From Histomonas meleagridis 2922-C6/04-290x (taxonomy: Eukaryota; Protista; Parabasalia), in NCBI GenBank assembly GCA_020184695.1, contig JAANOX010000055.1:1-64000 (forward strand): a stretch of 64,000 nucleotides of DNA, written 5' to 3'. Below, piece after piece: positions 6,321 to 35,230 of this stretch. Within the stretch, counting starts at the first letter, position 1. Each line of letters opens with the position of its first letter. The notes beneath the pieces were generated by a model. The model was given only the letters and a program-made list of their open reading frames with translations. It searched no databases and had not been told where the DNA came from. The translations under genes were made by a program, and so were the position numbers.

Positions 6321-6356
6321 TTCCTTTAATATTTGAATAAGATACTTGTAAAATTT

Positions 6357-8915: not shown

Positions 8916-8963
8916 GGGGTGCCCCTATTCCCAACCGCTATATTTGCGGTTTGGCCTTCCTTT
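8916..8963 (+). promoter_or_regulatory. ribosomal-protein gene promoter module: GGGTGCCC, M3-like GCGGTTT, M5 CCTTT
   Basis: GGGGTGCCCC 8916-8925, TGCGGTTT, CCTTT 8959-8963, ATG 8970. M3 and M5 are known T. vaginalis core promoter motifs. Confidence 0.6.
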
Positions 8964-8969
8964 TGGAAA

Positions 8970-9725: not shown

Positions 9726-9792
9726 AATGCACTTTTTGACTTTTCTATAGTTTTATTGGTCAGACAAAGTTAGTCAAAGCGAAAGCACGCAA

Positions 9793-10347: not shown

Positions 10348-10459
10348 TTCAATTAACGTTAAAACTTAAGATGTATATCATATAAACTTAACTGTTTTTC
10401 TAAGTAATTTTTTTTTGAATAATTAAAAAAATTAACGAATAATTTATTATCATTAACAG

Positions 10460-11431: not shown

Positions 11432-11489
11432 GATTCTGTGTTCTAATCTTTGGGCGATAATTAAACGTGCGATTGAAATCAGACGTTAA

Positions 11490-12431: not shown

Positions 12432-12728
12432 TATATAACAGTGATCTCGCAGAAAAAAGCTTTCTTCATAAGTTTTCGTTCTCTTCTAACATACGAAAAT
12501 GCGCAAATGAATGAAAACACTTTCATTCAAAGAATTATATTTATATTAATTTAATATTTGTGACTCAAAATGAACGTTCATTAAGAAATACGGAAAATTA
12601 TAATAAAAATTTATTTGTTAATTTTGTTTTTTACTAGGTTAATAAAAATATGATCGAGAATCTATGGGCCACTTTTTTCGTACGTTAAATCACCTCACCT
12701 TAGGTGCACTTTTAACGACTGCTTTCAC

Positions 12729-13355
12729 ATGAAGTCATTTAGTTCTTCATCTTCTGATGATGACGATTTTCAAGCCACAGAATCAGATGAGTACAGCGAT
12801 GACTTAATTCCAGAAGATGAAATTGTTAAGGAAGAAATATCATATGCAAAAGATCTTTTGGAAAATAAAGAAAATTTTTCTGATAGCTCAGATAGTGACA
12901 GTGACTTTAATCCAGACGCGGTAGAGAAAAACGAAAAAGCATACAGTGATGAATATTCCGGTGATGACAATATCAAATCTGAAAAAAATATAAAGAAAGA
13001 ATCTTCGAGCGATGATAGTAGTTTTAAAGAAGAGTCAGATGATATGCAATATAGTGAAGATGATTCGGAATTTCTTCACGAAGATCAAAAATTGCTTCAA
13101 AAAGAGGAACAAACTAAAGAACTTCAAATCAAACAGAGAGAAGAAATAGTGTCGTTACTTCGAGAGCTTATATCTATAATTCAACCAATTAATAGTGTTA
13201 ATGAAGCACTTTGTAATACACCTTTAGATGAAGAGACAGCCAAATCAATAACTCATATTTCTACAAAGCTTCTCTTTTATGGGAAGTATGATATTTATTC
13301 TTGCGGAATTGCTGAACTTCAATCTGAGCTTGAGAATCTTGAAAATTCTCCATAG
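12729..13355 (+). CDS. acidic protein, CD2BP2/Lin1 (U5-52K)-like central helical domain
   Basis: D/E/S-rich N-terminus, then LISIIQPINSVNEAL...ITHISTKLLFYGKYDIYS resembling Lin1/CD2BP2 (LQPGETVLEAL...L...G..DIY). Confidence 0.45.
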   Translation: MKSFSSSSSDDDDFQATESDEYSDDLIPEDEIVKEEISYAKDLLENKENFSDSSDSDSDFNPDAVEKNEKAYSDEYSGDDNIKSEKNIKKESSSDDSSFKEESDDMQYSEDDSEFLHEDQKLLQKEEQTKELQIKQREEIVSLLRELISIIQPINSVNEALCNTPLDEETAKSITHISTKLLFYGKYDIYSCGIAELQSELENLENSP

Positions 13356-13677
13356 ATTTTTTATCAATTTTATGAATAAATTTTATTGAATGAAATAATT
13401 TTAATAAACTTTATGTGACTAATTTTACAAAGAGATGGAAATAACATATTAATATTCCCAATATTGGGAATTGCAAAATAAGCAAAATCAGTAAATTAAA
13501 CATAAAGCAATCAAAGTATTATTTCATTTGATAATAGGTCTATTATAAGTTTCATAAATTATATGATACAAATCCAATACAACATAAACAAAATTAATTT
13601 TTTATCTGTATCGACATGACTTTTTGAATATAAATTCTATGTAAAACGATCAATATTATGACGGAATAGAAAAATTT

Positions 13678-14646
13678 TTATTCTGTTTTTTCGTGTTTTT
13701 TCTGTTGTTGTTGCTCAACTTGAGCCTGTGCCATCTCCCTTACTTGATTTAACATTCCTTTTCTCTTTCCTTCTGCTTTGGCCTTTGCAAGTTGTTCGTA
13801 TCTCTTCTGCCTCTCTTTTGCAATTTCTATCAATTTATCACGTCTTTGCTTGTTTTTCTCCACTATCTGTTCAGAGAACTGTTTGTTTATGTACAAATTT
13901 GTGATTTTGAGAGCAAATGTAAGAAGTTCAATTACAAGATTTGGATCAATAATAGAACTTTGAATTTCATACTGAGAATAAGATACAAATCTGATCTTTT
14001 GCTTAGTTTGAAACCTATTCATATCGCTCATCTCGAAGTAATTTAGAACATCTGGTTTTTCATTGACGAATTCTTTGAAAGCAGAATTAATATCTGATAT
14101 TTCTTTGGAAACATCAGAGTAAGAAATATATCCATTAAGGATTTCTTTATCGATGAGGCGAAAATCGTTGAGGAAAAATGGACGTTCTTTGGAAATGTGA
14201 ATCATGGATGAAGATTTGTAACGTGGTAGAACTGCAAATTCAAGTGTAAGTATTGCATTTCGTTTGGAAAATAATAAATGAAATGGATCACAGCGAGGAG
14301 AAAATCTAACACCAATTATAATTTCAAAAATACCATTCTTTCCAACAGGAATTGAGAATTCATATTCATGCATTCCATATTTCCTTGGAGGAGAAAGATC
14401 TTTTTCAAAATTCTTTTGAGCAAATTCTTGAAGAGTCTTTTGCAGTGAAAAAATTTGTTGGTGTATTCCTTGTTCGCCAAACTTTATTGCAAGAATAATT
14501 ATAATAAAAATTGATAAAATAAGGAATAATTGAATTCTAAAAGACCTATTTGAAGAATCTGTATTTTGTTCTGTGGTGTTGTTCACATTTACTTGTTGCG
14601 TTTCATTTTCGTTTGATAACGCAAACGCAAAAAGAATAAATATCAT
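13678..14646 (-). CDS. CCDC47 (DUF1682)-like ER membrane protein
   Basis: Signal peptide, single TM, GKNGIFEIIIGVRFSPRCDPFHLL similar to CCDC47 GR..CEGMLIQLRFLKRQDLL, and a basic coiled-coil C-terminus. First ATG at 14646. Confidence 0.6.
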   Translation of the reverse strand: MIFILFAFALSNENETQQVNVNNTTEQNTDSSNRSFRIQLFLILSIFIIIILAIKFGEQGIHQQIFSLQKTLQEFAQKNFEKDLSPPRKYGMHEYEFSIPVGKNGIFEIIIGVRFSPRCDPFHLLFSKRNAILTLEFAVLPRYKSSSMIHISKERPFFLNDFRLIDKEILNGYISYSDVSKEISDINSAFKEFVNEKPDVLNYFEMSDMNRFQTKQKIRFVSYSQYEIQSSIIDPNLVIELLTFALKITNLYINKQFSEQIVEKNKQRRDKLIEIAKERQKRYEQLAKAKAEGKRKGMLNQVREMAQAQVEQQQQKKHEKTE

Positions 14647-14904
14647 TGGTATAATAAGCGATACACATAAACATATCAAATTTTGGTTAGTTTACAAAAT
14701 CCTACTCCATGGAAATTTGCTCTATGGCATGGAATTGTAATTACATAATATTTCGTCTTTTCTTTATTACATTGTGCTGCAAAGAAGATATGCTTTATTC
14801 TATTCCAATATAAAAATTTCATTTATATAATTATTAATAATTATTTACAAAAAAGTTTTACTGAATAAAAATTATTTACTAACAAAAAATTACATAACTC
14901 ATTT

Positions 14905-15582
14905 TTAAGTGATTTTTTTGTGTGGAAATTTTTCATTTTGTTTATTTTTTGTATCCCATACTTTCTTCGATTTCTTTGGGTTTTCCTTTTCATTACCTTT
15001 TGATTTATTATCTGTAAAACGTTCTTTTTTAGGCATTGGTTTCTGCTCTCTTTTTTCTGGTTCCTTTAAAACATTTTGGAATTGAATATTATAAGGATCA
15101 TCAGGTTCGAAAAAAATATCTACTTTAAATGAAAAGCCTCCAGTACAATTTTGAGGCCTTGATAGTAAAACTTGTCTTTGATACATTTCTCGAAATTGCC
15201 CAAAATTTATTAACTGATCAGAATAATAAAATCCTGTGCAAAAATCAAGTGAAGTTGTGTTTTTGTCAGGGACGTCAAATGTAAACCCATGGAAATTAGT
15301 TAAAATTCTTGTCATTTCGTCAATTTGAATTTCTTCAGAAGATGTTTCTGATTCATCTGACTGAAAAGCCATAATGTGTTGTATGGGCTTTTTAAAAAAA
15401 GACGAATAAATAGGATAACGTAGTGAAAAAGAAGGATCATCTATAGATAGTTTTGGCTTTCTTCTTGCATACCGAATCACACTTTCATTAGTGCGCTTCT
15501 TAGGTTTGTTAGCAGGTTCACTTATATTGCTTTCCTTTTTCCAAAATCGATTTCTTTGGAGAGCTATTGAACTATTTCTCAT
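14905..15582 (-). CDS. hypothetical protein, 225 aa
   Basis: ATG ORF with Lys-rich termini. Confidence 0.6.
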   Translation of the reverse strand: MRNSSIALQRNRFWKKESNISEPANKPKKRTNESVIRYARRKPKLSIDDPSFSLRYPIYSSFFKKPIQHIMAFQSDESETSSEEIQIDEMTRILTNFHGFTFDVPDKNTTSLDFCTGFYYSDQLINFGQFREMYQRQVLLSRPQNCTGGFSFKVDIFFEPDDPYNIQFQNVLKEPEKREQKPMPKKERFTDNKSKGNEKENPKKSKKVWDTKNKQNEKFPHKKIT

Positions 15583-15935
15583 ATTTCCATAATAATGTCA
15601 TAAATAAAGTATTTAATTTTTTTTGACATGATAAAAGTTCACAAATATTTCACATATATTTTTTAACCAAAGCAACACAGGAAAATCTATCATTCGATGA
15701 CTAGGAAAATATTGAACATATGTTAAAAAGAAGCAAAGGCACAATAATTTTACCTTCAACCAAATAAAACATCATTTTTATATTTGAACAAAAAATTATC
15801 AATTTATGTACATTAAAAAATCAAGTAATGTTTTTTATTAGATTTCATTGTACTCCGAAGGCGTAAAGAAGTACGCATTGTGGTTCATTTTAATTACATA
15901 TACAAAGAAGGCAATTATGAAAATTATAGAAAGCA

Positions 15936-15955
15936 CTTAGTCATGCATGACTAAG
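15936..15955. repeat. perfect 20-bp palindrome
   Basis: CTTAGTCATGCATGACTAAG equals its own reverse complement and contains the stop codon of the 15937-16482 ORF. Confidence 0.95.
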
Positions 15956-16482
15956 AAAGCGATATTCATAGAGTATGGCAAAATGTCTTGAACGAAACTT
16001 CGTAATATATCTAAGATAGAAGATGACCCATATTTTTCAATAAAGAACTTGCTTACCTTTTCAGCAAACACTGGATCTTCTGTGAGGTATGCTGACCATT
16101 CTAACATTGCATCTCTTGCGAATAAGCTACCCATAATTTCAATACCAGAATTCCAATGTCTAGTCTGTGCAACGCCTACTATGTTGACGAGCAAGCAAAG
16201 AGCTTCGATGCCTATGAAGATAAAGTTTAGAATCTTAATATTACGAGAAAACCTATAAAGCAAGTAACAAGTAACTCCTAGAATCAAACAACCGGCGGCA
16301 AATATAGCGCAAAAACATGCTGTGGCAGTAAGAAGTGAACATTTTCCTCCTGCTGGTGCAAAGTATTCAACAGTATAATAGCACCACACAATAGAACCAA
16401 TCAAATACCCAACGGTATGGACAATGAAAAGCACAGCAGTGATGATGCACAATATGGTTGATATTTTTTTCTCGTCAGCCAT
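15937..16482 (-). CDS. tetraspanin-like membrane protein, apparently truncated within TM4
   Basis: Three TM helices plus the start of a fourth; ATG 16482 with upstream Inr TCACT. The frame continues past the TAA as a hydrophobic helix ending YNEI* at 15838. Confidence 0.65.
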   Translation of the reverse strand: MADEKKISTILCIITAVLFIVHTVGYLIGSIVWCYYTVEYFAPAGGKCSLLTATACFCAIFAAGCLILGVTCYLLYRFSRNIKILNFIFIGIEALCLLVNIVGVAQTRHWNSGIEIMGSLFARDAMLEWSAYLTEDPVFAEKVSKFFIEKYGSSSILDILRSFVQDILPYSMNIAFLVMHD

Positions 16483-17169
16483 GTGAAAAGTGACCATCAA
16501 TTGAATGGAAATTTTGTTGGTATCGGCATCAATTGAAATTTCTGCTTTACAACATCAGAATTTCAATATGTTTGTGAACCAACATCCAAAGGTTACTTTA
16601 TAGAACGTTTAACCAAGTTATTTAAATTGAATTAGAGCTCTACAAAAAAAAAATGGTTAAAAAGTGCCCAAAGTTAAGTGAAAATCCATTAATTTTTATG
16701 TTTTTCCCACTGAACATTCAATATTTATAAAAAATTTATAATTAAGTCATATCCTCTATTGTTGTTTTTACTATTTTCATCATTTTAATTTCAAAATAGG
16801 GATTAATCCCTATCCACACCTATTTCTTGGTAAAGTTAAACACAAAAAATAAACAAAATTCTCAAAGTTCAATAAAAATATCAACCAAAATTGCATTACT
16901 TGACTCTTTTCCTTCCATCACGATGTTTAGCCTTTGGGAAGCATCCGACAATTTTAAATCACATTTTGGAAATAAAAAATTCATAAGATCTTCTTGAAGA
17001 AGAGTTGGTCGACAATGTCCTAATAAAAATTTTAATATTATGATTTTATTCAAATGAATTAATTATTTTCTTTTTTTTTCAAGATCCTAGACGAATTCTG
17101 TTTTTGAATTTTTATTTGATCTTGAACTTTCTGCTTCAAATATATTGATTAAACTTTAAAAATTATTTT

Positions 17170-17530
17170 AAAACATAAAGCCATATAAATCAATTTAATA
17201 TTTTTCTCATTGACATCAATTCCTTCTTGTTCAAGAAGTAATATTACAATTTGAATATTATTTTTAGCAAATGCAATTCTGAGCGCTGTATTAAAAATTT
17301 TTTTGATACATCAAATTATCAAAATAGATTTTAAAATCAACAACAAAAAAACACTTTGAGCATTAATGTCAATATCTTGATGCTCAAGAAGTAATTTAAC
17401 TATTTCTGTTTAGCCACTTAAAGATGCAAATATAAGTGCTGTTTTAAATAATTTAAAAAATTTCCAAATATTTTTTTTAAATAATAAATTATTAAAATAA
17501 ATAATAAACAAAGGGATAATTTAAAAATGA
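17170..17530 (-). pseudogene. ankyrin-repeat gene remnant with AT-rich spacers between repeats
   Basis: TALIFASLSG*TEIVKLLLEHQDIDINAQS, then a 63-nt spacer, then TALRIAFAKNNIQIVILLLEQEGIDVNEKN; in-frame stops. Boundaries approximate. Confidence 0.7.
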
Positions 17531-18241
17531 TTTGCTGAAGTTTGGTCAATAATTCCATTTCTGTGTGTTTAGAATTGATAATTGATTTGTTGTTTGGGGA
17601 GTTATTTATTGACATTCCTTCGCAAATAGTAAAATAAAAAATTGACAGCTTTTCAACATTCATTAATAATTTGAGCAATTTAATGATATGACATTAAAAA
17701 AAAAGTGGATCTAATTTATCATTCGGTAAGTTTGCAGAATCTGTGTTGAAGAAAATCAAATCATTGAATTTGTAAGAAGAGAAGCTTTATAAATATAATA
17801 AAAAACATAACATATACCCCAATATAATTATATATGTGAATTAAATGTAATTAGATGCTCGGTCGGGTTTTTTTTATTTCCAATTATTTTGAGATATTAC
17901 AATATATATAAATATTTATATTGTAAATGCTTATTTTAGTATATAAATTAATTTTTGAAAAAGGTATTCCTGCTCTATTTTTGTAGAAAAATCACTTTCT
18001 TTAAATCGATTTTACATAAAGTATTGAAACAAAAACACTTTTTCAATATAATTTTTAACGGTTCACTCATTTGTGAACCTATTTCCTTGGGCGCAAAACA
18101 GAAGAACAAAAGTTTTATACAATTTAGTTTCATTATGCATTTATACTAATTATCGAAATCTTTTTTATGGCGAACAACTTCAAAAATAAAATTTCATAGA
18201 AATATTTTTTATTTAATCTTATCAACATGTTGAGTTCCAGT

Positions 18242-21200
18242 TCATTCACGAATTGATACATTCAAGCGCAATGTGAAAATTCTTAGTGTTGTCAAATAGG
18301 ACATAAAATCCGAATCTGTACACGCCAACAAATTCTCGTTCATGAATGGCTGTATATAAGCGTCGAATTGGTTATGCAAAGTTTGAGGTATTCGTAATAT
18401 CATTTGTTCTCTAATTGACAACATAATTTGGGGGTTAAATTGTATGAACACTCTAAATGTCATACTTGTCTTATATATATCGAAATCTTTTGTGCTATTA
18501 TTCATCAATTGATCCCATAACTCTACGATTATCATATTAATAATGTTTTGATTTCGATTTATTGTTTCCATTACTTGTTCATTATCTTTTGCCTTAATCA
18601 AAGCCATTCCAATGAAGTTTGAAGTTTCGATTGCGTTTTTAGATAATTCGCTATTGATATTACTAATGTTTTTATATATGATAGAGAACAAAAAATCGAA
18701 AAATGGTGCAGAAATAGTAATGCATGTTAACAAATGATATTTTGTTATCGCATTTAATGATTGTAACATTGCTTTAGTCAGTTTTGATAATGTAAATAGA
18801 TAATCCATATCAATAGTTTTGATTAAATTAATAAATGATCCTAATAAGTTATTAAGTGATGGATCATTATATAATTGAAATGCTCCAAACATTATTTGAT
18901 CATTGGACATAATTTGAGCAAACATTAACATCCCATATTTAATTGGTTTCATTTTGATTTGATATATTTGTTCTTGCGTTAAGTTATCGTTTGGGATTTG
19001 TGTTATATGATTAAATAATGGTTCTAATATAGATGCAACAAGTTTAAATAAGATAATTCCATTCGGTGAATGCGGTGGAATTTTAATTTTCCGTTGTTGA
19101 TTATTATTATCTTGATAAATTAATAAATACCAAAACTTTAAATATATATTTAATGTGATTGGGAAATTAAACAAATTGTTTATAAGTGGTACAAACGCTG
19201 GAAGTTTTGCTGGGAATAACCAATTAAAGATAAATTCACAATTACTTTCATTACTTAATAATGCTCCAATTAATTCATATAAAAATATAGTTAACGTTTC
19301 AATGTTAATCTCATTACTTAATGTTGATAGACGTAATTCTAATCCTTCAATATACTTCGGTAAAAGTTCTTTACGTGCTGTAACGATATTAGTGATAATA
19401 CTCATGAATTGTATAGTCTCATGTTTATTAGAATTTGAATAAATAAATGGTAATTTCTCTTGCATTGATAATATGACAATTGTTTCGGCCGATTTCGAGA
19501 TTTGTATGGGTGGAATGCCGCCAAGTGATTTGATATTGGATTCAATTAATAATGTAATAATTGAATTTAAACATTTAACTGCAATACGAATATTATGTGA
19601 ATCGATTTTTAATGATAAATAAATTCGTTCTAAGATTTTATCATATAGTTGAATGGATGTCGTGAAATCTAAATCATAATTTTCATATTGTATATCAAAA
19701 TTACGAAATATCGAATACTTAAAATGTTGAATAAAGATTAATATGGCAGTCTCAGTACAATAGATTTCATTTTGTACGATAAGTGGTAATTGTTTCCCTG
19801 TTTGATCCATTATCATTAAAAGTAATTTCAAAAAATTAATTTCAAATTCTTGTGGAATCTCATAATTTGATTTGGTTAATATCCATGACTTTAAGCTTGA
19901 GGTCATTAATATGATTAATAATGCTAATTTAATATCTGAGGTTTGAATGTTTGGGTTTTGTGGATTAAGAAATTCTTGAAATGTTTGATACGTAGCATCT
20001 AATAATGGTTGAGCTAAGGATTGGAAATCAGTTTTAAGTAAATGTGGAACTATAGACGCTGAATCACAAATATAATTATCATCAAGATGTAATATTTCAT
20101 ATATTTCATTCGGATTCGTATCGGCGGCGGTTATAAGTGATGTGATGTAAAGTTGATAAAGTGGCGAAACCGATGGCAAAAGTTGAATCTTATTTAATCG
20201 TGCTATACAATTGATCCAAAACTTCATTATATAAACAATTGATTGATTCTCAGTAATTACTGCACCTGACTTAAGTTTATACTCGGTAAGGTTAGAACAA
20301 CTTGCAAGAAAAATTTGGAAGTTTTGAATGTTCATATAAATTTCACCATCCATCCAAAGTATCATCTTATATAACACAAGAGAAAACTTTAAAAATATGT
20401 CTTTGTTCTTAACAATATCAAGTTGTGACGCTTGAGTTAGAAGATACACAAGTGACGAAACAACATTGATCCTATCGTCCTTTGATGCAAAAAAGGAGCT
20501 CTTGACTGAACAAATATGATAAACAATATCAAGAGCTAAGGTGATACTGGGTGGCTGGACTCCAGGTGTTAATATGAACCGGAAGAAAAGTGGAAATAGT
20601 TCTTGATTGGAAATGATATTTCGAAAACATATGGCCAATTTACATTCTTCTTGATAAACACCATCATGCTCACCTTTAGGAGTGGTAGCTTCTTTCATGT
20701 CAAAATGAAGACAACTTAATGCTAATTTTAATGCATTATCCATATATGCTTGTGTGATATTCTCTGATGTTCGAATGATTTCAACAGCATGTGTAAAACA
20801 AATTAAAAGTGGTTCGGCTTGAATTTGACTTTTAATTTTGGATTTTGGATCTGGAAATTCTTGAAAAGCAATAATAGTTTCATTTAAAAAACAAATTCCA
20901 AAAATGGCGTTGATAGTATTGTTAGGAGGTATTGCTTCAAGGACTTGTTGTGGAAAGTTTTGAATAATTGGACAAGTATTCCATCCATGGAAAACAATTG
21001 TTGCATATGATGTTCCAAGTGCCTTAATGAAAAGTGATTGAAAATTTGATGGGAGTGAAGCAAACTGTTCTACATGATTTTGACAATAATTTAATATCCA
21101 TTTTGCAAAGTCGAGCATTTGATTCATTTCCATATTTGGAACGCATCTCTTCATGAACCCAGAAAATTTTGTAGATGCAAAATATAGCATATATGGATTA

Positions 21201-21352
21201 TTTGACATTTCAAGAATGGTTTGGCAATGAATTAAATACGATGGATCGTTATCAAAAGGAATAAGTACTTCGTCCATTGTGTTCGTGGGTTGGGTAATGT
21301 TTCTAACAACAATTTCTTCGAGTTGTGCTATTTGTTCAACGCTTAAGGACAT
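18242..21352 (-). CDS. XPO7: exportin-7 / RanBP16-like karyopherin
   Basis: Long HEAT-like helical protein; MFGAFQLYNDPSLNNLLGSFINLIKTI resembles XPO7 [27 protein letters not shown]; N-terminal NPYMLYFAS. First ATG at 21352. Confidence 0.7.
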   Translation of the reverse strand: MSLSVEQIAQLEEIVVRNITQPTNTMDEVLIPFDNDPSYLIHCQTILEMSNNPYMLYFASTKFSGFMKRCVPNMEMNQMLDFAKWILNYCQNHVEQFASLPSNFQSLFIKALGTSYATIVFHGWNTCPIIQNFPQQVLEAIPPNNTINAIFGICFLNETIIAFQEFPDPKSKIKSQIQAEPLLICFTHAVEIIRTSENITQAYMDNALKLALSCLHFDMKEATTPKGEHDGVYQEECKLAICFRNIISNQELFPLFFRFILTPGVQPPSITLALDIVYHICSVKSSFFASKDDRINVVSSLVYLLTQASQLDIVKNKDIFLKFSLVLYKMILWMDGEIYMNIQNFQIFLASCSNLTEYKLKSGAVITENQSIVYIMKFWINCIARLNKIQLLPSVSPLYQLYITSLITAADTNPNEIYEILHLDDNYICDSASIVPHLLKTDFQSLAQPLLDATYQTFQEFLNPQNPNIQTSDIKLALLIILMTSSLKSWILTKSNYEIPQEFEINFLKLLLMIMDQTGKQLPLIVQNEIYCTETAILIFIQHFKYSIFRNFDIQYENYDLDFTTSIQLYDKILERIYLSLKIDSHNIRIAVKCLNSIITLLIESNIKSLGGIPPIQISKSAETIVILSMQEKLPFIYSNSNKHETIQFMSIITNIVTARKELLPKYIEGLELRLSTLSNEINIETLTIFLYELIGALLSNESNCEFIFNWLFPAKLPAFVPLINNLFNFPITLNIYLKFWYLLIYQDNNNQQRKIKIPPHSPNGIILFKLVASILEPLFNHITQIPNDNLTQEQIYQIKMKPIKYGMLMFAQIMSNDQIMFGAFQLYNDPSLNNLLGSFINLIKTIDMDYLFTLSKLTKAMLQSLNAITKYHLLTCITISAPFFDFLFSIIYKNISNINSELSKNAIETSNFIGMALIKAKDNEQVMETINRNQNIINMIIVELWDQLMNNSTKDFDIYKTSMTFRVFIQFNPQIMLSIREQMILRIPQTLHNQFDAYIQPFMNENLLACTDSDFMSYLTTLRIFTLRLNVSIRE

Positions 21353-22207
21353 TTCTGATTTAAACGGTTTATTCAATGATTATAAATTATTGAAAAGTTC
21401 TTGTAATTAAATGGTTTACATTTTTATTTAACTTAATTGCCATTTTCACTTCATTGATAGGAAAATCAGAAATGCTTTCATCATTGTGTTTAAGGGTTCG
21501 ACTTTGATGTTAGATATGGAACCATTCTTTCGTATGGATCATTTATGATTCCGCTGATATTCGATACCTTTTTGAATTTTTTAATTTCACAAACACATGA
21601 TAAATAAAAATAATTAAATAATTTATCTAATCGAATTTTACAAGTCAATTTGCCTACAACGCATTATAAAAGAAAATATCGGATTCAGTATTGTATACAA
21701 TAAACGTTTTATGCTAAATATAATGAAGAAATCGCACTGAATGTTTTGGTGGTTTTAGGATTCAGATATATTAATAATTTGGTTATTCTGCAACATTATG
21801 ATAATACTAGAATAGTATTAGTATTATTTAAGAAAAATTATAATTTTAAAATATCATCAAACTATATGATGTTATTGTTGCTTCTGCTCGATGTTATTAT
21901 AAAATTAACTCAAATTTGGAATCATGATGAAATCCTTGAAGTAAATCTTGAGCATAAATTTGAAAATGTCTTTTCTGGATATTTTGAATGTTTGATAGCT
22001 ATTTATGAACTTAACATATGTAATCTCATTAAATTACACTTTTTGAATTGATTATGACGTGAATTTAATTTAACCAAAAAGTTCGTATTTTACAACACAC
22101 TTTGCAACCGAAAAAAACGAATTGAAAAAGTCATATATTGACTATAAAAAAATTCAATGCGCAGCATTGAAATATTTGTATGATTAATCGGTTCGTGGGC
22201 CCTATTA

Positions 22208-22224: not shown

Positions 22225-25200
22225 ATGGTCCGCATTCTTGCTCATCGCAATGGAGAAGAGGCCGCAGTTGTCCTTACATTCGAAGGCAACATGGACGCAC
22301 TCTTAGCAGCTGCCAAAGAAAAACTCGGAGCAACATTTACTCGTGCATTTCTTAATAAAGGAGCTGAAATCACTGATACCTCAGCTATAGAAAAAGATGA
22401 TGATGTCTACTTCTCGACTGGAGCTGATTTCATCGAGCCAGCTAAGCTTACAGAACGTGAAAGAAAAATTGTTCAATCTATTCAAACACGAGTAAGACAT
22501 AATATGATTTTTTACGTCAATGGAAAGAGATATGAAATCGAAAACCCAGATCCAGAAATGACACTTCTTGAATGGCTCAGATTCCAAGGGTATACTTCTG
22601 TTAAAAAGCCATGTGGCGAAGGTGGTTGTGGTGGCTGTGCTGTTGCAGTAGCTGAATACGACACAAAGAGACAACGCGCTCATCATTTTGCCGTTAATTC
22701 TTGCTTAGTTCCACTTCCATTTGTTGATGGCTGTGCAATCACAACAGCTGAAGGCGTTGGCCAAAGTGAGCATCTTCATCGTATCCAAAAAGATCTTGCC
22801 GAAATGCATGGTACCCAATGTGGATTTTGCACGCCAGGTATTGTTACCACATTATACGCATTATTTGCAGAGAATCCCGAAAGAACAATTGAAGAAATTA
22901 ACGAAGCGTTATCAACAAACCTTTGTCGTTGCACAGGATATCGTCCCATTTTCGATGCAGCACGTCGTTATGCAATTGACTTCGACAAATCAGCATTAGG
23001 CGAACTTACAACAACAGGCAGAGACATTGAAGAAATCGAAAATGTTATTTCAACACGTGAACGTCCACTTGTCACAGCTGATTTCCCAGAAGAACTTATC
23101 AATTTCCATACATTAGATCCACTTCTTGTCTCTGGTCCAGAGTCAACATGGTTTGCACCATCCAACTTCGAGCAAGTTAAGAAAGTTCGTGCTTCAGAAG
23201 GTGCACAATGCAGTTTCGTTAACGGTGCTACTGATCTCAACTTTAAGAAATGTTATCACCCAGATATGGTATGGAGATTCATGTGCGGAACACGTCGTGT
23301 TGATGAACTCAAACAAATCACACCAGAGAAAGATGGCGTTTACTTTGGTTCTTCAGTATCTATTAATGAATTCGGTCAATATTGGGAAACATTAAAAGAT
23401 GGCGAACAAGCATTACTTTCTAAGGCTATCACAACAATTACAAAACAATTCGCTAACTATAACATTAGAAACATTGGTACAATCGGTGGTTCCCTTTGCG
23501 CTGGTGATGCACTTTCTGATCTTTGCCCAATCCTTATGGGTCTTAATGCACAATGTAACATTGTTTCACTTGAAGGTGAATCCCGTACTGTATCAGCACA
23601 AGACTTCGTACTCAAACGTGACTTGAAGCCATCCGAAATCCTTTACACAGTATTCGTTCCATTCGCTAAGCCAAACGCATTCATCAAGTCATATAAGATA
23701 TGTCGTCGTCGTGAAGATTCACAAGCACTTTGTAATTGCTGCTTCAACATAATCATTGAAAACAAGAAAGTTACATCTGCACATTTAGCAATTGGTGCCG
23801 TTGCTGCTAAGCAATATATTCCACAAGATGCATTAGATGCACTCGTAGGTAAAGAATGGAACTTCGCTACATATGAACAATTCCGTGATGATGTTCTTAA
23901 GAACCTTCAAGTATCAAATCGTGTCGGTCAAGCACAACTTCGTCTTGATCTTGTTCGTGCATGCATCTACAAGTACTTCCTTTGGGTTCTTGATCGTATC
24001 CAAGGTAATGTTCCAGCAAACATAATGAGCGCTTCTATTCCAACAGAACGTAAGCCACGTACATCTCATCAAGATTGGGAACAAAGAACAGATAAAGTTC
24101 TTGGTCAACAACCACATCATATCTCTGCTTATGGACATACAACAGGTGAAGCCAAATTTGTTGCTGATATTGATCCACCAGAGAAATGTGCATATGCATA
24201 TCCAGTTTTATCCACTAATGCACGTGCAGAAATAGAATCAATTGATGCTTCACAAGCACTTGCACTTGAAGGCGTTATTGCATTTGTTTCCGAAAAGGAT
24301 ATTCCAGGAGCAAAGAAGATATGTTCTATTCCACCAGCAGATGAAGATGTCTTTGCTATTGGTAGAGTCAACTTCTATGGACAAGTCATTGGTGTTGTAG
24401 TTGCAGAAACAGAAAAACTTGCCATCAAAGGTGCACGTCTTGTTAAAGTCACATATAAGAATGCTGAGACACCAATTGTTACAATTTATGATGCACTTGA
24501 TTATTACGAAAAACATAAAGAAACAGATAACATCCTTATGGTAGATCATCTTGGTCTTCATAAAGGTAATGTTAAAGAAGCTAAATGCAAATACGAAGTT
24601 ACTGGTCAATCACATTTCAATAACCAAGAACACTTCTATCTCGAACCAAACTCAATGCTTGTTGTTCCACAAGGTACTGAAGGATGGAAGATATATGCAG
24701 CATGTCAAAACCCAGGAAAGATTCAAGACTCAGTTGCTGCAGTACTTAATGTTCCACGTAATATGATTCGCTGTGAAGTAATGCGTCTTGGCGGTGGCTT
24801 CGGTGGTAAACAAGATCGTCCACAATTCTATGCTGCACAAGCTGCAATGGCAAGTTATGTTACAAAGAGACCAATCAGACTCGTTATGCAAAGACAAGAT
24901 GATATTGCTACAGCAGGTATGCGTCATGAATATGTAACTGATTATGATATTGGCTGTGATGAAAATGGAATGCTCACTAAGATGGACTTCCTTTATCATT
25001 CTAACGCTGGTTGGACAATGGATCTTTCACGTCTTGTTATGGACCGTACGCTTTACTCTGCAACTGGTGGTTACTCATGTCCAAACGTTAACTCATATGG
25101 TAACATATACCGCACAAACAAACTTTCATGCACTGCTTTCCGTGGCTTCGGTGTTCCACAATCTTTAATTGCAGTAGAAACTGCTATGGCCAAACTTGCA

Positions 25201-26358
25201 CATACATTAGGCGTTAGACCAGAAGAACTTAAAGAAAAGAACCTTTATCACAAAGGCGATAAGACACTCACTGGTTATGAACTTCCAGATGAAACAATCC
25301 GTCGTTGTTGGGAAGTCTGTAAGAAGTCATGTGACTGGGATGCACGCGTTAAAGAAGTAGAAGAATTCAACAAGACACACGTCTACAAGAAGCGTGGCAT
25401 TGCAATGACACCAGTTGTATCTACAATGGGCTTCGAATCAGAGTTCATGATGAAGGGACAAGCACTTGTCCAAATATACGGAGATGGTTCTGTCACTGTA
25501 TCACACGGCGGTATCGAAATGGGCCAAGGCATCCACACGAAGATGGCAATGATTGCTGCCGAAACACTCGGAATCGACTACATCTTCGTCAAAGTACTTC
25601 CAACAGCTACTGACAAGACAGCGAACATGCCTCCAACAGCAGGTTCAACAGGCACAGACCTCCACGGCCGCGCTGTAGAGAATGCATGCAAAGAACTCAG
25701 AGAGCGCCTCCAGCCAATCAGAGACGAGCATCCAGATTGGACGTGGCCGCAAGTCTGTGGTTACGCATACTTCAACAAGTTCGACATGCAGTCATCAGCA
25801 TTCAACAAGATGCCGAACTCAGTCTACAACCACGAGACGCATGAAGGGCGCGAGTCATTCTATCTCATATGGTCAGTCGCATTCAGCATGGTCGAAATTG
25901 ACGTTCTCACAGGCGAACACGTACTCCTTAGGGCTGATCTTGTGCATGACTGCGGGTCATCAATCAATCCGGGCATTGATATTGGACAACTCGAAGGCGG
26001 CTTCGTGCAAGGCCAAGGCTTGTACACACTCGAAGAAATGATATGGGCGAAGGACGGACACATTCGAACAAGAAACGTCACCACTTATAAGATACCAACA
26101 CTCGACGATATCCCAGACGACTTCAGAGTGACATTGCTTCATGATGACTATAACAATATGGGCGTCGTCGGATCTAAGGCCTCTGGCGAAGCAGGTCTTC
26201 GTATGGGATGCTCAGTGCTTATGGCACTTCGTGACGCTGTTACAGCAGCACGCGCACAATTCGGAGTCACTGAGTGGTTCGACTTCCATTCGCCAGCAAC
26301 AATCGAAGTCATTCGTGAAAAGATACCAGTGAAGTACCTCGACCCAGAGCAGCAATAA
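22225..26358 (+). CDS. XDH: xanthine dehydrogenase/oxidase family molybdo-flavoenzyme, single chain, with extra N-terminal KHA/DCX-like domain
   Basis: 2Fe-2S motifs KKPCGEGGCGGC, NSCL, QCGFCTPG, NLCRCTGYRPI; FAD domain NIRNIGTIGG; Moco domain QEHFYLE, GGGFGGK, AFRGFG, GGIEMGQG, GQLEGGFVQGQGLYTLEE, KASGE. Confidence 0.95.
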   Translation: MVRILAHRNGEEAAVVLTFEGNMDALLAAAKEKLGATFTRAFLNKGAEITDTSAIEKDDDVYFSTGADFIEPAKLTERERKIVQSIQTRVRHNMIFYVNGKRYEIENPDPEMTLLEWLRFQGYTSVKKPCGEGGCGGCAVAVAEYDTKRQRAHHFAVNSCLVPLPFVDGCAITTAEGVGQSEHLHRIQKDLAEMHGTQCGFCTPGIVTTLYALFAENPERTIEEINEALSTNLCRCTGYRPIFDAARRYAIDFDKSALGELTTTGRDIEEIENVISTRERPLVTADFPEELINFHTLDPLLVSGPESTWFAPSNFEQVKKVRASEGAQCSFVNGATDLNFKKCYHPDMVWRFMCGTRRVDELKQITPEKDGVYFGSSVSINEFGQYWETLKDGEQALLSKAITTITKQFANYNIRNIGTIGGSLCAGDALSDLCPILMGLNAQCNIVSLEGESRTVSAQDFVLKRDLKPSEILYTVFVPFAKPNAFIKSYKICRRREDSQALCNCCFNIIIENKKVTSAHLAIGAVAAKQYIPQDALDALVGKEWNFATYEQFRDDVLKNLQVSNRVGQAQLRLDLVRACIYKYFLWVLDRIQGNVPANIMSASIPTERKPRTSHQDWEQRTDKVLGQQPHHISAYGHTTGEAKFVADIDPPEKCAYAYPVLSTNARAEIESIDASQALALEGVIAFVSEKDIPGAKKICSIPPADEDVFAIGRVNFYGQVIGVVVAETEKLAIKGARLVKVTYKNAETPIVTIYDALDYYEKHKETDNILMVDHLGLHKGNVKEAKCKYEVTGQSHFNNQEHFYLEPNSMLVVPQGTEGWKIYAACQNPGKIQDSVAAVLNVPRNMIRCEVMRLGGGFGGKQDRPQFYAAQAAMASYVTKRPIRLVMQRQDDIATAGMRHEYVTDYDIGCDENGMLTKMDFLYHSNAGWTMDLSRLVMDRTLYSATGGYSCPNVNSYGNIYRTNKLSCTAFRGFGVPQSLIAVETAMAKLAHTLGVRPEELKEKNLYHKGDKTLTGYELPDETIRRCWEVCKKSCDWDARVKEVEEFNKTHVYKKRGIAMTPVVSTMGFESEFMMKGQALVQIYGDGSVTVSHGGIEMGQGIHTKMAMIAAETLGIDYIFVKVLPTATDKTANMPPTAGSTGTDLHGRAVENACKELRERLQPIRDEHPDWTWPQVCGYAYFNKFDMQSSAFNKMPNSVYNHETHEGRESFYLIWSVAFSMVEIDVLTGEHVLLRADLVHDCGSSINPGIDIGQLEGGFVQGQGLYTLEEMIWAKDGHIRTRNVTTYKIPTLDDIPDDFRVTLLHDDYNNMGVVGSKASGEAGLRMGCSVLMALRDAVTAARAQFGVTEWFDFHSPATIEVIREKIPVKYLDPEQQ

Positions 26359-26467
26359 GTTAATGGTCTTATATTCTTTTAGAATAAACAAACAATAGCA
26401 ATGCATTTATGTGTTTATAATTCGCAATAAAATATATTTTTAGGAAAGCTGAAACATTTGACGTGTA

Positions 26468-27298
26468 TCAGATTTCGATTGTTACAATTGACTCTTCGAT
26501 TTGCTTTCTGACCCGTTCGAAAGGGGTTTCTGGCGTGTCAACATTCTGCCATTGATTTGCATAGTTCAAGCAAGGGCAAATATATGTAATATCATCCTTC
26601 TTCACGACTTTTCGGTAGTGCACATGACCGCACACCGCATATTTCACAGGGTATTTTTTGTAGAGTTCCCCAAATTGCTCACTCCCTAAGAAGGCATTAA
26701 AGTAGCGCCAGCTTTCGCGTATTTCTGGAACACAAAATTCTCGAATAGGAAGCATGTGTGTAACAACAATTTGAGGATAAGATGCGTATTTTTGAAGAAA
26801 ACTTTCAATACGTGTTAACATTTCTGAACATTTTCCTGGATTGTCCTTTGTCCATTGGTTTAATATAGAATCCTGCCATCGTCGTTTTTGATAAGTCATT
26901 GCATCAAAGTCTGTTTTTGTAAATTCTGGATTTCCAAAAGAATAATCAAACCACCCAACATCCCCTATTAAAGCATATGTTGACGTTTTCCCCTGAAGAA
27001 GAATTGGATTTCCACATAAGCAACGTTGATCGGTAACAAATTTTTGGTAAATATCATCTGTAGAAGTATGCTCTTTTTCGAAATTCCTGCACCATAAGTC
27101 GTGATTTCCAGGAACATAATAAACAGGAACATTCATCATCTCTTCTAAACGTTTTGCAGTTTCCATCGATTTAATAACACCTTCGCATAAATCACCAGCT
27201 AACACAAGTACATCACAAGGGAAAGAAGCAATTGCCTCTAGTACAGGATACTTTTTATTAACATCTATATGAATGTCAGATAAAAAGGATATTTTCAT
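26468..27298 (-). CDS. calcineurin-like metallophosphoesterase, bacterial type
   Basis: SDIHID, AGDL, PGNHD, GWFDYSF, VTHM, FNAFLGS, CGHVH. Likely ATG at 27298 (MKISFLSD). Confidence 0.88.
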   Translation of the reverse strand: MKISFLSDIHIDVNKKYPVLEAIASFPCDVLVLAGDLCEGVIKSMETAKRLEEMMNVPVYYVPGNHDLWCRNFEKEHTSTDDIYQKFVTDQRCLCGNPILLQGKTSTYALIGDVGWFDYSFGNPEFTKTDFDAMTYQKRRWQDSILNQWTKDNPGKCSEMLTRIESFLQKYASYPQIVVTHMLPIREFCVPEIRESWRYFNAFLGSEQFGELYKKYPVKYAVCGHVHYRKVVKKDDITYICPCLNYANQWQNVDTPETPFERVRKQIEESIVTIEI

Positions 27299-27739
27299 CA
27301 AAAGAAAATTATGACTTAGAAAAATACCAAATCTTTTTGCCAAATGTGCATACACACCTAACAGAGACACTAAAATATGAAGTTTTGACTGCAATCAAAG
27401 CAAAATAAAAACTTTTCATATTTTTGTAAAAATGAAATCAGAAACAAGTTTTTTTTAGATAAAGCAAAGGTTTATGAAAATGCCTTTATGGATGTTATGT
27501 CAATAATTAGCTTATATAGCCCCCGATTAAAACATTTATAATATTTACGTAATTTAATGTTTTTTGAAATTTCGTTTTTCTTCCACTGTGTTTTTGTTGT
27601 CCAAATAGAGTCTAACATGTTGATCATATGATGGACATCCATACTTAGATTACTTCAAAAAAAATTAAATTTCTTTATAAAAACTCACACTCGTGATTTT
27701 TTATACCAAGTCAAACCTGAAAAATGACTAGTACTTAAA

Positions 27740-28104
27740 ATATTTTAACCCAATTTTTCCAACAGAGATTATTTACAATCAATAAAATATTTTATAATTT
27801 TTATTCCAATTTCTATACAATTTTACAACAACAAAATGAACAAACAAATTCAGATAACACTTATATTTATATCATAATTGGTGTTGTAATTGCAATAATT
27901 ATCGTTATTGTTTTGGTTATTGTTTTGTTAATACATTTCAGGAAGAAGAACAATTTAGCAAGCGAAGAAGCAATTTCGGAAGATTTCTATCAAATTGTCA
28001 CAACTAACAATGGCAATTTCTCTGTCGGAGTAACAAATACGAATGTTGATGAAGATCTATTTGCGGAAGACTTTAAAGAAAATAATTTGATTAATAAGAT
28101 ATAA
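27740..28104 (+). pseudogene. orphan TM plus cytoplasmic tail of a surface-protein gene
   Basis: Open frame ...NSDNTYIYIIIGVVIAIIIVIVLVIVLLIHFRKKN...DEDLFAEDFKE; no ATG-led ectodomain; upstream stop near 27736. Confidence 0.5.
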
Positions 28105-28206
28105 ATATTCAATGAATAAATTTAACGTGTTTTTGTTTTGTATTTTTCCATAAAATCAATTTTTAAAAAGAAGATGCAATTGACGGTTTTGAATTTATTT
28201 ACGTTT

Positions 28207-29421
28207 TCAAGCTATTTGGTGTGGTTCATTACGGGCAACTATTGCTTTAAGTGCTGCAGCAACTGATTTGCACTTACAGTGCATTATCATTGAAGCGATG
28301 ATGAATGGTTTATGTGAAGCCTCATTGTATGTATCCAAACGGTGCTTCTGGAAGCATTCGTTTGTGATTTCTCCTCTTTCACATGAAAGTCCAGAGATAT
28401 CTGCTGGGAGGCAGTGCATGTAAAGAGCGTTTTTGGTCGTTGCCATCATTTCATCATCAGTTTGCCAATCAATGAACTTCTTATTAAGCTCAAGGCATTC
28501 TTTCTCAGTGACCTTAAGACCATCATAGTCCTTAGCTTTGAGTTGTTCTGTACGACGAGCAGATATGAACATTGGAGCCCAACTCTTTGGATATACAACA
28601 TCAGCACCAACGAAAGCTGCCTTCATGTCATGCGTAATTTCGAATGTACCGCCTGATTTCTCAGCATTCTTACGTGCAATTTCAACAATCTCTGGAATAA
28701 GGTCATAGCCTTCTGGATGAGCAAGAACAAGATTCGTGCCGAAGCGAGAAAGAAGAGCAATGATGGATTGTGGAACTGAAAGTGGTTTTCCATATGATGG
28801 GGAATATGCCCATGACATAACAATCTTCTTACCTTTGAGAGCTTCGATGGAGCCGAAGTGTTTGACAAGGTGAGAAAGATCGGCCATGGCTTGTGTTGGA
28901 TGATCTTCATCACATTGAAGATTGACAATGCATGGACGTTTCATTAAAACATTACGTTCGTGAGATTCTGTGATGGATGAGGCAACTTCTAACATGTATG
29001 TGTGGCCAGCACCAAGATAAAGATCATCACGAATACCAATGCATTCAGTAAAGAATGAAATCATAGTGGCCGTTTCACGAACTGTTTCGCCGTGTGAGAT
29101 TTGGGACTTACCTTCATCAAGATCGGATGGAGTTAAACCGAGTAAGGAAGCAGCACTCATGAAAGAGAAACGTGTGCGTGTAGAATTGTCACGGAATATG
29201 GAGGCTGCAAGACCACCATTGAAAATCTTGCATGATACATTCTTGCGGATAAGTTCTTCAAGTGCCCAACTGCAGTTAAGGGTTGAACGGATAACTTCAT
29301 CATTCATGTCCCAGGTGCGGAGCCAATCGCCACCATATGTGTTAACCTTTGGCTCAAGTTTTTCGCACTCAGCGATGTATTGTTCCACGCTCATAAAAAG
29401 TGAAATGTTTGGTTCGTTCAT
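28207..29421 (-). CDS. ygeW: YgeW-type (knotted) carbamoyltransferase
   Basis: FRDNSTRTRFSF, QISHGETVRETATMISF, GIRDDLYLGAGH, NLQCDEDHPTQAMAD, WAYSPSYGKPLSVPQ, VYPKSWAP, YMHCLPADI: YgeW signatures, distinct from OTC and ATC. Confidence 0.93.
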   Translation of the reverse strand: MNEPNISLFMSVEQYIAECEKLEPKVNTYGGDWLRTWDMNDEVIRSTLNCSWALEELIRKNVSCKIFNGGLAASIFRDNSTRTRFSFMSAASLLGLTPSDLDEGKSQISHGETVRETATMISFFTECIGIRDDLYLGAGHTYMLEVASSITESHERNVLMKRPCIVNLQCDEDHPTQAMADLSHLVKHFGSIEALKGKKIVMSWAYSPSYGKPLSVPQSIIALLSRFGTNLVLAHPEGYDLIPEIVEIARKNAEKSGGTFEITHDMKAAFVGADVVYPKSWAPMFISARRTEQLKAKDYDGLKVTEKECLELNKKFIDWQTDDEMMATTKNALYMHCLPADISGLSCERGEITNECFQKHRLDTYNEASHKPFIIASMIMHCKCKSVAAALKAIVARNEPHQIA

Positions 29422-34138: not shown

Positions 34139-35230
34139 ATGTTCTTCTTTTGCATTACTTTGTTTGTAGCTAATATTCGAACATTTGATGAACAAACATC
34201 TTCAAAAGATATATATAATGATGTAATTCAACAAAATGAAAACTTGGATGATATTATACCAAATACTAAAATACAAGTTAAATGTGGTGATGAATTAACA
34301 GGAGAATATGATCAAAACACTGGTATACTCGTTATAACAGGAAATGGCGAAATGTATGACTTCGAGAATCAAATTCCTGATTGGAGATATTTTACGGGAT
34401 TAGGATTTGTTGTCATAAGAGATGGGCCTACTTCTATAGGTAGTTTTGCATTCAATGGAACAAATTTAGCTTCAATAAGTATTTCTTCAACTGTTACAAC
34501 TATTGGTGATTCTGCATTCCAAAACTGCAAAAGTTTAACTTCTATTAACATATTAGAAGACTCGAAATTAGTTACAATCGGTTCAGGCTCATTTCGCGTT
34601 AGTGGTTTAAAAGATGTTACAATACCAGATAGTGTTACAACTATCGAATCTGGCGCTTTTATGTCTTGCACAAGTTTAACATGCGTAATATTAGGAAAAA
34701 GTGTTGTAACTATTGGTGATTACGCTTTTGCATCTTGCACTGAGTTATATTCGATTAGTTTTAAGGGAAATAAGGATTTGACTGACTTATCCATTTTCCC
34801 ATTTTATGGAATTGATGAAGATTTTGGATATGTTTATGTGCCTGATACTTATGAAAGTGAAAGTTTTTGCTCACTTAGAATTAGCAAAAGAAATGATGAT
34901 GGAGATATTGCTAAATGTAGAACAAAACCTTTTTACTATGGCTTTACATTTAGTTACGTAGTACAAAAAATAGTGGCAGTGGTGGGAATTATTGGAGTTG
35001 TACTTAACATAATTTCGGCTTTTCTAATGTGCTGCAACTATTGGCAAGAATATAAAGTAAGAAAGTTATTGACAAGTGATGCTGGGAAAGTTAGAAATAT
35101 GAGGATTGAAACTATAAGAGGTATTGCAGCAGAAATTAATACTGTTTCTAACAAGTTGGGTGAATGTAAAGCTTTAATGGATACCTTAATTAGGAATGAT
35201 GAAAATAACAATCATGAAGCATCACCATAG
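34139..35230 (+). CDS. BspA-like LRR membrane protein
   Basis: Hydrophobic N-terminus, CGDELTGEY..TGILVITGNGEMYDF cap, TpLRR repeats (ISSTVTTIGDSAFQNCKSL, IPDSVTTIESGAFMSCTSL), TM near the C-terminus. Confidence 0.88.
   Translation: MFFFCITLFVANIRTFDEQTSSKDIYNDVIQQNENLDDIIPNTKIQVKCGDELTGEYDQNTGILVITGNGEMYDFENQIPDWRYFTGLGFVVIRDGPTSIGSFAFNGTNLASISISSTVTTIGDSAFQNCKSLTSINILEDSKLVTIGSGSFRVSGLKDVTIPDSVTTIESGAFMSCTSLTCVILGKSVVTIGDYAFASCTELYSISFKGNKDLTDLSIFPFYGIDEDFGYVYVPDTYESESFCSLRISKRNDDGDIAKCRTKPFYYGFTFSYVVQKIVAVVGIIGVVLNIISAFLMCCNYWQEYKVRKLLTSDAGKVRNMRIETIRGIAAEINTVSNKLGECKALMDTLIRNDENNNHEASP

Follow-up and report, generated by a model that had tools for sequence, protein, structure and literature searches.

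The question raised by this locus is whether three metabolic genes lying side by side in a protist genome form a working cluster or have come together by accident. The genes occupy positions 22225–29421 of a 64,000-nucleotide stretch (hereafter, the window; positions 1–64,000 of contig JAANOX010000055.1, assembly GCA_020184695.1) of the parabasalid Histomonas meleagridis 2922-C6/04-290x, and they encode a xanthine dehydrogenase (XDH)-family enzyme, a metallophosphoesterase and a carbamoyltransferase of the YgeW family. A first-pass annotation had proposed that they form a chimeric eukaryotic cluster for anaerobic purine catabolism, and its starting observation was confirmed, as the three long open reading frames (ORFs) are present at exactly the coordinates it reported, within ~7.2 kb, with their families recovered by Pfam and NCBIfam models. 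Our preferred interpretation, to which we assign a probability of roughly 0.55, is that these are three real and expressed H. meleagridis genes of three different origins, the adjacency of which arose recently or by an accident of this lineage and does not reflect a conserved metabolic cluster, and that YgeW, the XDH-like enzyme and the phosphoesterase hold the roles proposed below. The features of the locus are as follows.

22225..26358, + strand: XDH-family molybdo-flavoenzyme of 1377 amino acids (Pfam, residue mapping, MAFFT tables, tree, RNA contig depth)
26468..27298, − strand: metallophosphoesterase of Firmicute type (TIGR03729), ~276 amino acids from Met33, the ORF being open to a TTG at 27394
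27739..28104, + strand: remnant of a surface-protein gene, with a hydrophobic helix and a short tail (translation, ORF list)
28207..29421, − strand: YgeW knotted carbamoyltransferase of 404 amino acids (NCBIfam models, structure match, RNA)

Origins and expression of the three genes

The YgeW protein exceeded both NCBIfam equivalog cut-offs (562.8 vs. 453 and 535.5 vs. 500 bits; NF005538 / TIGR03316) and produced full-length matches with the YgeW structures of Escherichia coli (3Q98; E 2.5e-144, residues 28–395) and Enterococcus faecalis (2YFK; E 9.7e-137). The motifs STRTR, HPTQ and HCLP, shared with both bacterial proteins, are intact in the Histomonas sequence, where S80–R84, H174–Q177 and H336–P339 correspond to invariant columns. 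Unlike its bacterial counterparts, the Histomonas gene is encoded by a eukaryote, polyadenylated, present in two dispersed copies and placed in a weakly supported, almost wholly eukaryotic group. The transcript carries a poly(A) tail and ends near 28180 (a poly-T loose end in run X3), ~27 nt past the stop codon, and an alternative start at Met10 coincides with the start annotated for the paralogue. This second copy, located in an unrelated region of the same assembly (L007 10001–11188, GCA_020184695.1), exhibits 99% amino acid and 91.7% nucleotide identity; the two copies differ at 89 synonymous vs. 3 non-synonymous codons, and YgeW is under strong purifying selection.

The YgeW tree recovered a parabasalid clade with 100% support, and all the eukaryotic sequences (parabasalids, oxymonads, skoliomonads, Mastigamoeba and metagenomic relatives) fell, along with one long-branch bacterium, into a single group with a support of 85. 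For oxymonads and skoliomonads, direct translation of the genomic DNA does not yield the protein, as would fit genes with introns. Because YgeW is common to many anaerobic protists and these sequences group in the tree, it is an old resident of such organisms, presumably acquired from the bacterial family before the parabasalids diversified, and not a recent acquisition from gut bacteria. The lateral acquisition proposed by the first-pass annotation thus stands as descent from a bacterial family and falls as a recent uptake in the gut, and its placement of YgeW in the family belonging to the bacterial anaerobic urate gene set agrees with the cut-offs, the 3Q98 match and the two urate papers of 2025 (10.1101/2025.05.19.654654; 10.1101/2025.04.24.650524).

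In the XDH-like protein, Pfam models recovered, in order, the full set of seven domains that make up a single-chain xanthine oxidoreductase (XOR), namely Fer2, Fer2_2, FAD_binding_5, CO_deh_flav_C, Ald_Xan_dh_C, MoCoBD_1 and MoCoBD_2 (E 4e-9 to 8e-80). This domain order is shared with the bovine and human enzymes (1FO4, 3UNC, 2CKJ; ~35–40% identity), as are the 2Fe-2S cysteine motifs and residues Q767, R880, R912, F914, F1009 and E1261 (bovine numbering). Unlike bovine and human XOR, the protein belongs to a separate clade with Anaeramoeba and Archamoebae, has a changed pocket and bears an extra N-terminal KHA/DCX-like domain of ubiquitin fold (residues 4–63, 22234–22413), which was also detected in the parabasalid relatives and in the Anaeramoeba members of the clade; the Anaeramoeba XDH-like protein has ~70 further N-terminal residues. 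The pocket changes comprise E802 to Q, T1010 to E, S876 to L and V1011 to S, so that the window protein presents Q863 at bovine E802 and E1071 at T1010, with R941 preserved at R880. Glu802, Arg880 and Thr1010 are residues that we take to contact substrate and inhibitor in xanthine oxidase, and out of these three only Arg880 is kept, hence the protein failed the test for a canonical XDH pocket. The same three are named as xanthine oxidase residues in a published study (PMC8154014). The protein also scored below every NCBIfam XDH/aldehyde-oxidase equivalog cut-off (763 vs. 1912 for TIGR02969; 633 vs. 849.5 for TIGR02965), a failure of limited weight since the models are mammalian and bacterial. 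A vertebrate-type aldehyde oxidase, in which Glu802 is replaced by Val, Ala or Leu and Arg880 by Met or Lys, was ruled out, since R880 is kept and position 802 is Gln; the aldehyde-oxidase rows of the same alignment read V/K, V/T and L/K at 802/880. Glu606 of E. coli XdhD was also considered as a counterpart to the relocated glutamate and set aside, as the region is gapped and the positions do not correspond.

The combination of Q802 and E1010 was found in all parabasalid relatives, in Anaeramoeba, Mastigamoeba and Pelomyxa and in three further sequences, and in none of ~100 other listed eukaryotic XDH/aldehyde-oxidase sequences; the Mastigamoeba and Pelomyxa proteins have additionally lost R880. 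In a quick tree built under a simple model, the Q802/E1010 proteins occupied one side of a branch with a support of 100. This clade (the window protein with P0131, P0132, P0134, P0139, P0151 and P0207) was seen only in anaerobic protists, from two supergroups (Metamonada and Amoebozoa), and represents either an old paralogue or a gene moved between anaerobic eukaryotes. Because the glutamate by which xanthine is oriented now stands across the pocket, beside the retained arginine, the enzyme probably binds a purine-like substrate in an orientation other than that of xanthine. This protist-specific clade with its relocated glutamate offers a test case for substrate orientation in molybdenum hydroxylases. 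The description of a eukaryote-style single-chain XDH is therefore accurate as to chain and type (Pfam), and the pocket residues and the tree do not support calling it a canonical xanthine dehydrogenase. A second Histomonas copy of this gene, with 97% amino acid and 95.5% nucleotide identity, lies at an unrelated locus (L171 10001–14134, GCA_020184695.1) and differs at 131 synonymous vs. 37 non-synonymous codons. For the second copies of both XDH and YgeW, the DNA homology ends within ~40 nt of the coding sequence, which indicates that the duplications were the size of a gene, with strong purifying selection acting on the copies. Histomonas has at least two additional XDHs of a more canonical kind, known from proteomics peptides that the window protein does not match, and the Skoliomonas XDH is also of the canonical type.

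The phosphoesterase was recovered by Metallophos (E 2e-16) and scored 164.9 bits against the 148.25-bit cut-off of TIGR03729, with the metal motifs DIH (DxH), GD, GNHD and GHVH (GHxH) present. Its homologues begin at residue 33 of the ORF (26468–27394), so the start is probably the ATG at 27298, and an RNA contig covering 26448–27332 fits this position; the public model of 232 amino acids begins at ORF residue 77 and is devoid of the DxH and GD motifs. In a library of 1.8 billion representatives, the nearest relatives (46–50% identity) belonged to the gut Firmicutes Negativibacillus, Solobacterium and Lachnospiraceae. In the Solobacterium and Negativibacillus contigs (L172, L174), the relative lies at the close of a conserved operon with a peptide-type ABC transporter, containing a HAD hydrolase, an SBP_bac_5 binding protein, two permeases, two ATPases, the TIGR03729-like Metallophos and a small second Metallophos, a composition that suggests uptake and dephosphorylation of a phosphorylated compound. 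Compared with these TIGR03729 ‘acc_ester’ enzymes, the Histomonas gene stands alone between XDH and YgeW. No homologue was detected at any of 80 bacterial ygeW loci, and the gene is best regarded, from its sequence relationships, as a separate Firmicute-derived element with no detectable tie to purine catabolism. As a separate observation, a phosphohydrolase gene directly follows this type of XDH at three loci, though the family changes from one locus to the next, namely Metallophos (window 26468–27298), an NTPase_1-like protein with a weak Pfam match (L171 14225–14809) and a HAD protein (ERZ17292902 contig), which may be due to chance.

Five public runs flagged as probable RNA contain the stretch, and we compared contig depths among the three genes, which is a poor measure of expression, though the differences were large. 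In runs X2 and X3, YgeW exhibited by far the highest depth (~1,000–18,000), part of it possibly contributed by the 92%-identical paralogue, followed by XDH with ~240–760; the phosphoesterase reached ~11 in X2 and ~8 in X3, that is, ~20–50× below XDH, and the spacer 0–4. Run X1 yielded a single contig (26426–28371) that reaches from the phosphoesterase across the spacer into the 3′ end of YgeW, at a depth equal to that of XDH, which reflects either read-through from YgeW into the downstream phosphoesterase on the same strand or DNA in the library. The balanced co-expression expected of a cluster was not apparent, the contig depths in X2 and X3 varying among the genes by a factor of ten to a thousand. 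The earlier suggestion that the phosphoesterase supplies bases was likewise not borne out, considering its absence from the 80 ygeW loci, the transporter operon of its relatives and its low RNA level with respect to XDH.

Roles proposed for YgeW and the XDH-like enzyme

The reductive urate pathway was worked out in 2025, in bacteria only (10.1101/2025.05.19.654654; 10.1101/2025.04.24.650524). In this pathway, urate is reduced to 2,8-dioxopurine; YgfK, SsnA and HyuA then remove its aromaticity and open the rings, which leads to 2,3-diureidopropionate. One ureido group of this compound undergoes phosphorolysis by YgeW, which, together with the carbamate kinase YqeA, allows the formation of ATP. 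The phosphorolysis has been demonstrated for E. coli YgeW only, and neither of the two papers mentions eukaryotes. YgeW-type genes of Trichomonas vaginalis were noted, without a function, by a 2015 review (PMC4581275), and full-text searches pairing ygeW or other pathway genes with Trichomonas returned no paper connecting the pathway with protists. The same logic operates in the arginine dihydrolase pathway (catabolic ornithine carbamoyltransferase and carbamate kinase), which exists in trichomonads (PMC4581275) and in which ureido phosphorolysis leads to carbamoyl phosphate and, via carbamate kinase, to ATP; it differs from YgeW in the carbamoyltransferase subfamily and in the substrate.

We propose that Histomonas YgeW most likely acts like the bacterial enzyme, phosphorolysing a ureido group of 2,3-diureidopropionate to release carbamoyl phosphate, which carbamate kinase would turn into ATP. 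The XDH-like enzyme, in which the catalytic machinery is kept and the pocket glutamate has shifted from 802 to 1010, may act upstream of YgeW, and the phosphoesterase would remain a separate, Firmicute-derived component outside purine catabolism. Birds reflux urine into their caeca, and ATP gained from urate would be useful to a bacteria-eating anaerobe of this urate-rich organ. Uricolytic anaerobes have been isolated from chicken caecum and faeces (10.1101/2025.05.19.654654).

Candidates for the remaining steps were sought among published Histomonas proteins. The proteins reported as jointly up-regulated in an attenuated strain include two XDHs, one amidohydrolase, a ‘peptidase T-like’ protein of the M20 family, a pyridoxal phosphate (PLP) enzyme and a DHOD-family protein (PMC6250841). 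For the M20 peptides, the best match (E 8e-6 and 1e-4) was to an M20 gene that forms part of complete ygeW clusters in Acidobacteria, and for two of the three amidohydrolase peptides the best match was, weakly, an SsnA homologue; the mean summed scores of the three (78, 68 and 59 for SsnA, HyuA and GuaD homologues, respectively) slightly favor SsnA. The peptides of the PLP enzyme seem closer to a threonine or serine dehydratase than to YgeX. Comparison of the peptides with the E. coli pathway proteins was too weak for family assignment and was set aside, the 80 bacterial loci performing somewhat better. The genome-paper tables contain at least three ‘Xanthine dehydrogenase’ lines, two of 1377 and one of 1296 amino acids, as well as ‘molybdenum cofactor sulfurase’, ‘MoeB’ and ‘Peptidase T’ (PMC8529796), and a second proteomics paper gave no matches for the missing Histomonas steps.

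Several observations weigh against the interpretation that we prefer. T. vaginalis has YgeW, yet in both searches the 120 relatives listed for the window XDH included none of its proteins, so YgeW does not depend on this XDH clade; an XDH-family protein does exist in that species (PMC10090643). None of the proteomics XDH peptides matches the window protein, as they derive from two other, more canonical paralogues, and the peptide matches to the candidate pathway enzymes are weak and suggestive at most. With respect to the adjacency, the chance of finding one XDH–YgeW pair within two genes is ~0.003 by a rough, post hoc estimate that takes ~11,100 genes (PMC8529796), two YgeW and about four XDH-family genes as inputs, and the arrangement may therefore not be pure chance, although this low probability is only suggestive and is unbacked by conservation. 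Additionally, XDH genes are truly linked to ygeW in bacteria, at 33 of the 80 loci.

A somewhat unlikely alternative, which still deserves serious consideration, assigns the two enzymes to unrelated processes, with YgeW acting on another ureido or amino compound or in an anabolic role, the XDH-like protein acting as a general oxidoreductase of aldehydes or N-heterocycles, and no reductive urate pathway in existence. The retention of YgeW in T. vaginalis alongside no listed relative of the window XDH is in line with such a separation, as are the loss of the canonical E802 and the lack of any other pathway gene beside every eukaryotic YgeW or XDH examined. What lowers its probability is that YgeW lies above the equivalog cut-offs with all invariant columns kept, and that the sole reaction demonstrated for its family belongs to urate degradation (10.1101/2025.05.19.654654; 10.1101/2025.04.24.650524). 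Moreover, the purine-holding residues R880, F914 and F1009 are kept in the XDH-like protein, whereas the vertebrate aldehyde oxidases in the alignment are devoid of R880, and XDHs are up-regulated together with the amidohydrolase, M20 and DHOD-family proteins (PMC6250841).

A dispersed eukaryotic pathway for the fermentation of urate or purines is plausible in the light of the indirect evidence from proteomics, peptide matches and annotation. Its most far-reaching version, which we hold to be rather improbable, states that a reductive urate pathway operates from scattered genes in anaerobic protists, among them parabasalids, Archamoebae and perhaps further groups, and that in this pathway the Q802/E1010 XDH would be an analogue of XdhD/XdhAC acting on urate or 2,8-dioxopurine bound in a flipped orientation, and YgeW with carbamate kinase would yield ATP; the adjacency in Histomonas would then represent a first step towards physical clustering. 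If Histomonas and Trichomonas did ferment urate or purines to ATP via YgeW, this would constitute a new source of energy and nitrogen, would fit the urate-rich caecum of birds and would point to enzymes that the host should lack, in a disease described as having neither treatment nor prophylaxis in the genome paper (PMC8529796). Two leads are worth keeping, namely a reductive purine pathway that eukaryotes may possess, centred on the heavily transcribed YgeW, and the anaerobic-protist XDH clade with its re-arranged pocket.

Linkage of the XDH-like gene and YgeW

A true eukaryotic metabolic cluster, in which selection would hold XDH, phosphoesterase and YgeW together under common regulation so as to convert nucleotides into bases, urate and ultimately carbamoyl phosphate plus ATP, appears highly doubtful to us. 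The adjacency is real and, for this pair, has the low chance of ~0.003 given above, and bacterial ygeW genes often lie beside XDH genes; however, the linkage was absent in all the relatives examined and at the paralogous loci. We compared linkage at all fetched loci, which comprised T. foetus, T. vaginalis, three metagenomic parabasalids, M. exilis, Skoliomonas and the Histomonas paralogues, and the synteny in other parabasalids on which the cluster proposal depended was missing at every locus read. The XDH orthologue of Tritrichomonas foetus (64% identical) has no YgeW or Metallophos gene within 10 kb, and no XDH was found near YgeW in T. vaginalis or at another metagenomic YgeW locus. In a metagenomic parabasalid, XDH (71%) and YgeW (83%) reside on different long contigs from the same sample. 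The closest available relative (XDH 87%, YgeW 85%, one ENA sample) has its XDH followed by a HAD hydrolase gene and its YgeW followed by a gene of 724 amino acids; the latter was considered as a possible XDH fragment and treated as not XDH, being absent from the top matches of a search with the C-terminal half. Neither the second Histomonas XDH locus nor the second YgeW locus exhibited XDH–YgeW linkage, which leaves a single adjacent pair out of those possible in this genome, and neither this linkage nor pathway neighbors of YgeW were found in M. exilis (an oxymonad) or Skoliomonas.

YgeW and the phosphoesterase share a strand, with the latter downstream and within the X1 contig that spans 26426–28371, and a phosphohydrolase of some kind follows this type of XDH in three loci, both of which would suit a cluster. 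Against these stand the RNA depths that lie one to three orders of magnitude apart in X2 and X3, the absence of the phosphoesterase from all 80 bacterial ygeW loci together with the unrelated operon of its relatives, and the decayed gene between phosphoesterase and YgeW. The chimeric cluster proposed at first is therefore sound as to the adjacency itself and fails as a conserved or co-inherited linkage, in relatives as at the Histomonas paralogous loci, and the claim, which we consider weak, is not upheld.

The known uricolytic clusters of E. coli, Clostridium sporogenes and C. difficile contain xdhD or xdhAC, ygfK or uacX, ssnA, hyuA and ygeW, as well as yqeA, ygeY and ygeX. The Histomonas locus resembles them in having an equivalog-level YgeW near an XDH-family gene and in its anaerobic, urate-rich gut setting. 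Unlike them, it holds only two of the approximately eight functions, its XDH is a eukaryote-type single chain and not XdhD or XdhAC, and its genes, which are monocistronic and convergent, have a decayed gene between them and show no synteny in relatives. Scanning with the E. coli proteins (tblastn) detected no SsnA, HyuA, YgeY, YgeX, YgfK or carbamate kinase in the window or within 10 kb at eight other eukaryotic loci, and no further purine-pathway gene was found in the 64-kb window by Pfam or by tblastn with E. coli proteins. The window also failed the test for a uricolytic cluster, in which the marker ssnA lies beside reductase, hydantoinase, M20 hydrolase and diaminopropionate lyase genes. 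Among the 80 bacterial ygeW loci, besides the 33 with XDH genes, we observed YgeY at 60, carbamate kinase at 35, YgfK at 32, HyuA at 30, SsnA at 28 and YgeX at 23. A bacterial ygeW locus from a metagenome-assembled genome of Opitutaceae (L018 12605–16336) gave a continuous 3.7-kb match with 32% identity to the single-chain Histomonas XDH, which suggests that this verrucomicrobial urate cluster contains an XDH gene in fused form.

Authenticity and surroundings of the locus

The window is AT-rich, with ~25–43% GC in 2-kb bins, and is packed with apparently intron-free ORFs. YgeW and XDH are 99% and 97% identical, respectively, to proteins recorded under these names for H. meleagridis, in agreement with the gut-type protist of the first pass. 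Ordinary eukaryotic genes flank the locus, encoding IFT38/Cluap1, a chromo domain protein, ribosomal proteins S3Ae and S6e, Rab, RhoGEF-kelch, kinases and BspA-type leucine-rich-repeat proteins, and the GC content at third codon positions (GC3) of the three genes (0.30–0.36) falls inside the range of neighboring host genes. Independent contigs from the RNA runs cover all three genes and bridge genes and spacer. Owing to these eukaryotic flanks, the host-like GC3 and the independent contigs, contamination or misassembly, which had been named as grounds for rejecting the cluster, is very unlikely and is excluded for practical purposes. An artefact in which contaminating DNA or a chimeric assembly fused bacterial genes to protist sequence, as might be imagined for two neighboring bacterial-type genes from cultures kept xenic with E. 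coli DH5alpha (PMC8529796), a carrier of its own ygeW cluster, is already effectively refuted, given that E. coli YgeW is clearly different in sequence and far away in the YgeW tree, that the nearest bacterial YgeWs are only ~55–60% identical to the window protein, that two contigs are on record for each of the identical XDH product, the public product of the phosphoesterase gene and the YgeW paralogue, that GC3 is host-like with eukaryotic genes on both sides, that the YgeW transcript carries a poly(A) tail and RNA-run contigs bridge gene and spacer, and that orthologues exist in other parabasalid genomes.

The surface-protein remnant noticed in the first pass was also recovered. The frame at 27739–28104 (+) encodes one hydrophobic helix and a short tail, and the frame upstream of it is broken by many stops, which fits a decayed surface-protein gene. 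Directly upstream of XDH, an ORF of 1044 amino acids (18242–21376, −) is without a Pfam match. BspA-type leucine-rich-repeat surface-protein genes are located at 6832–8247 and 34139–35230, the former of which additionally exhibits weak Rifin/Stevor-like matches in its C-terminal residues 339–467.

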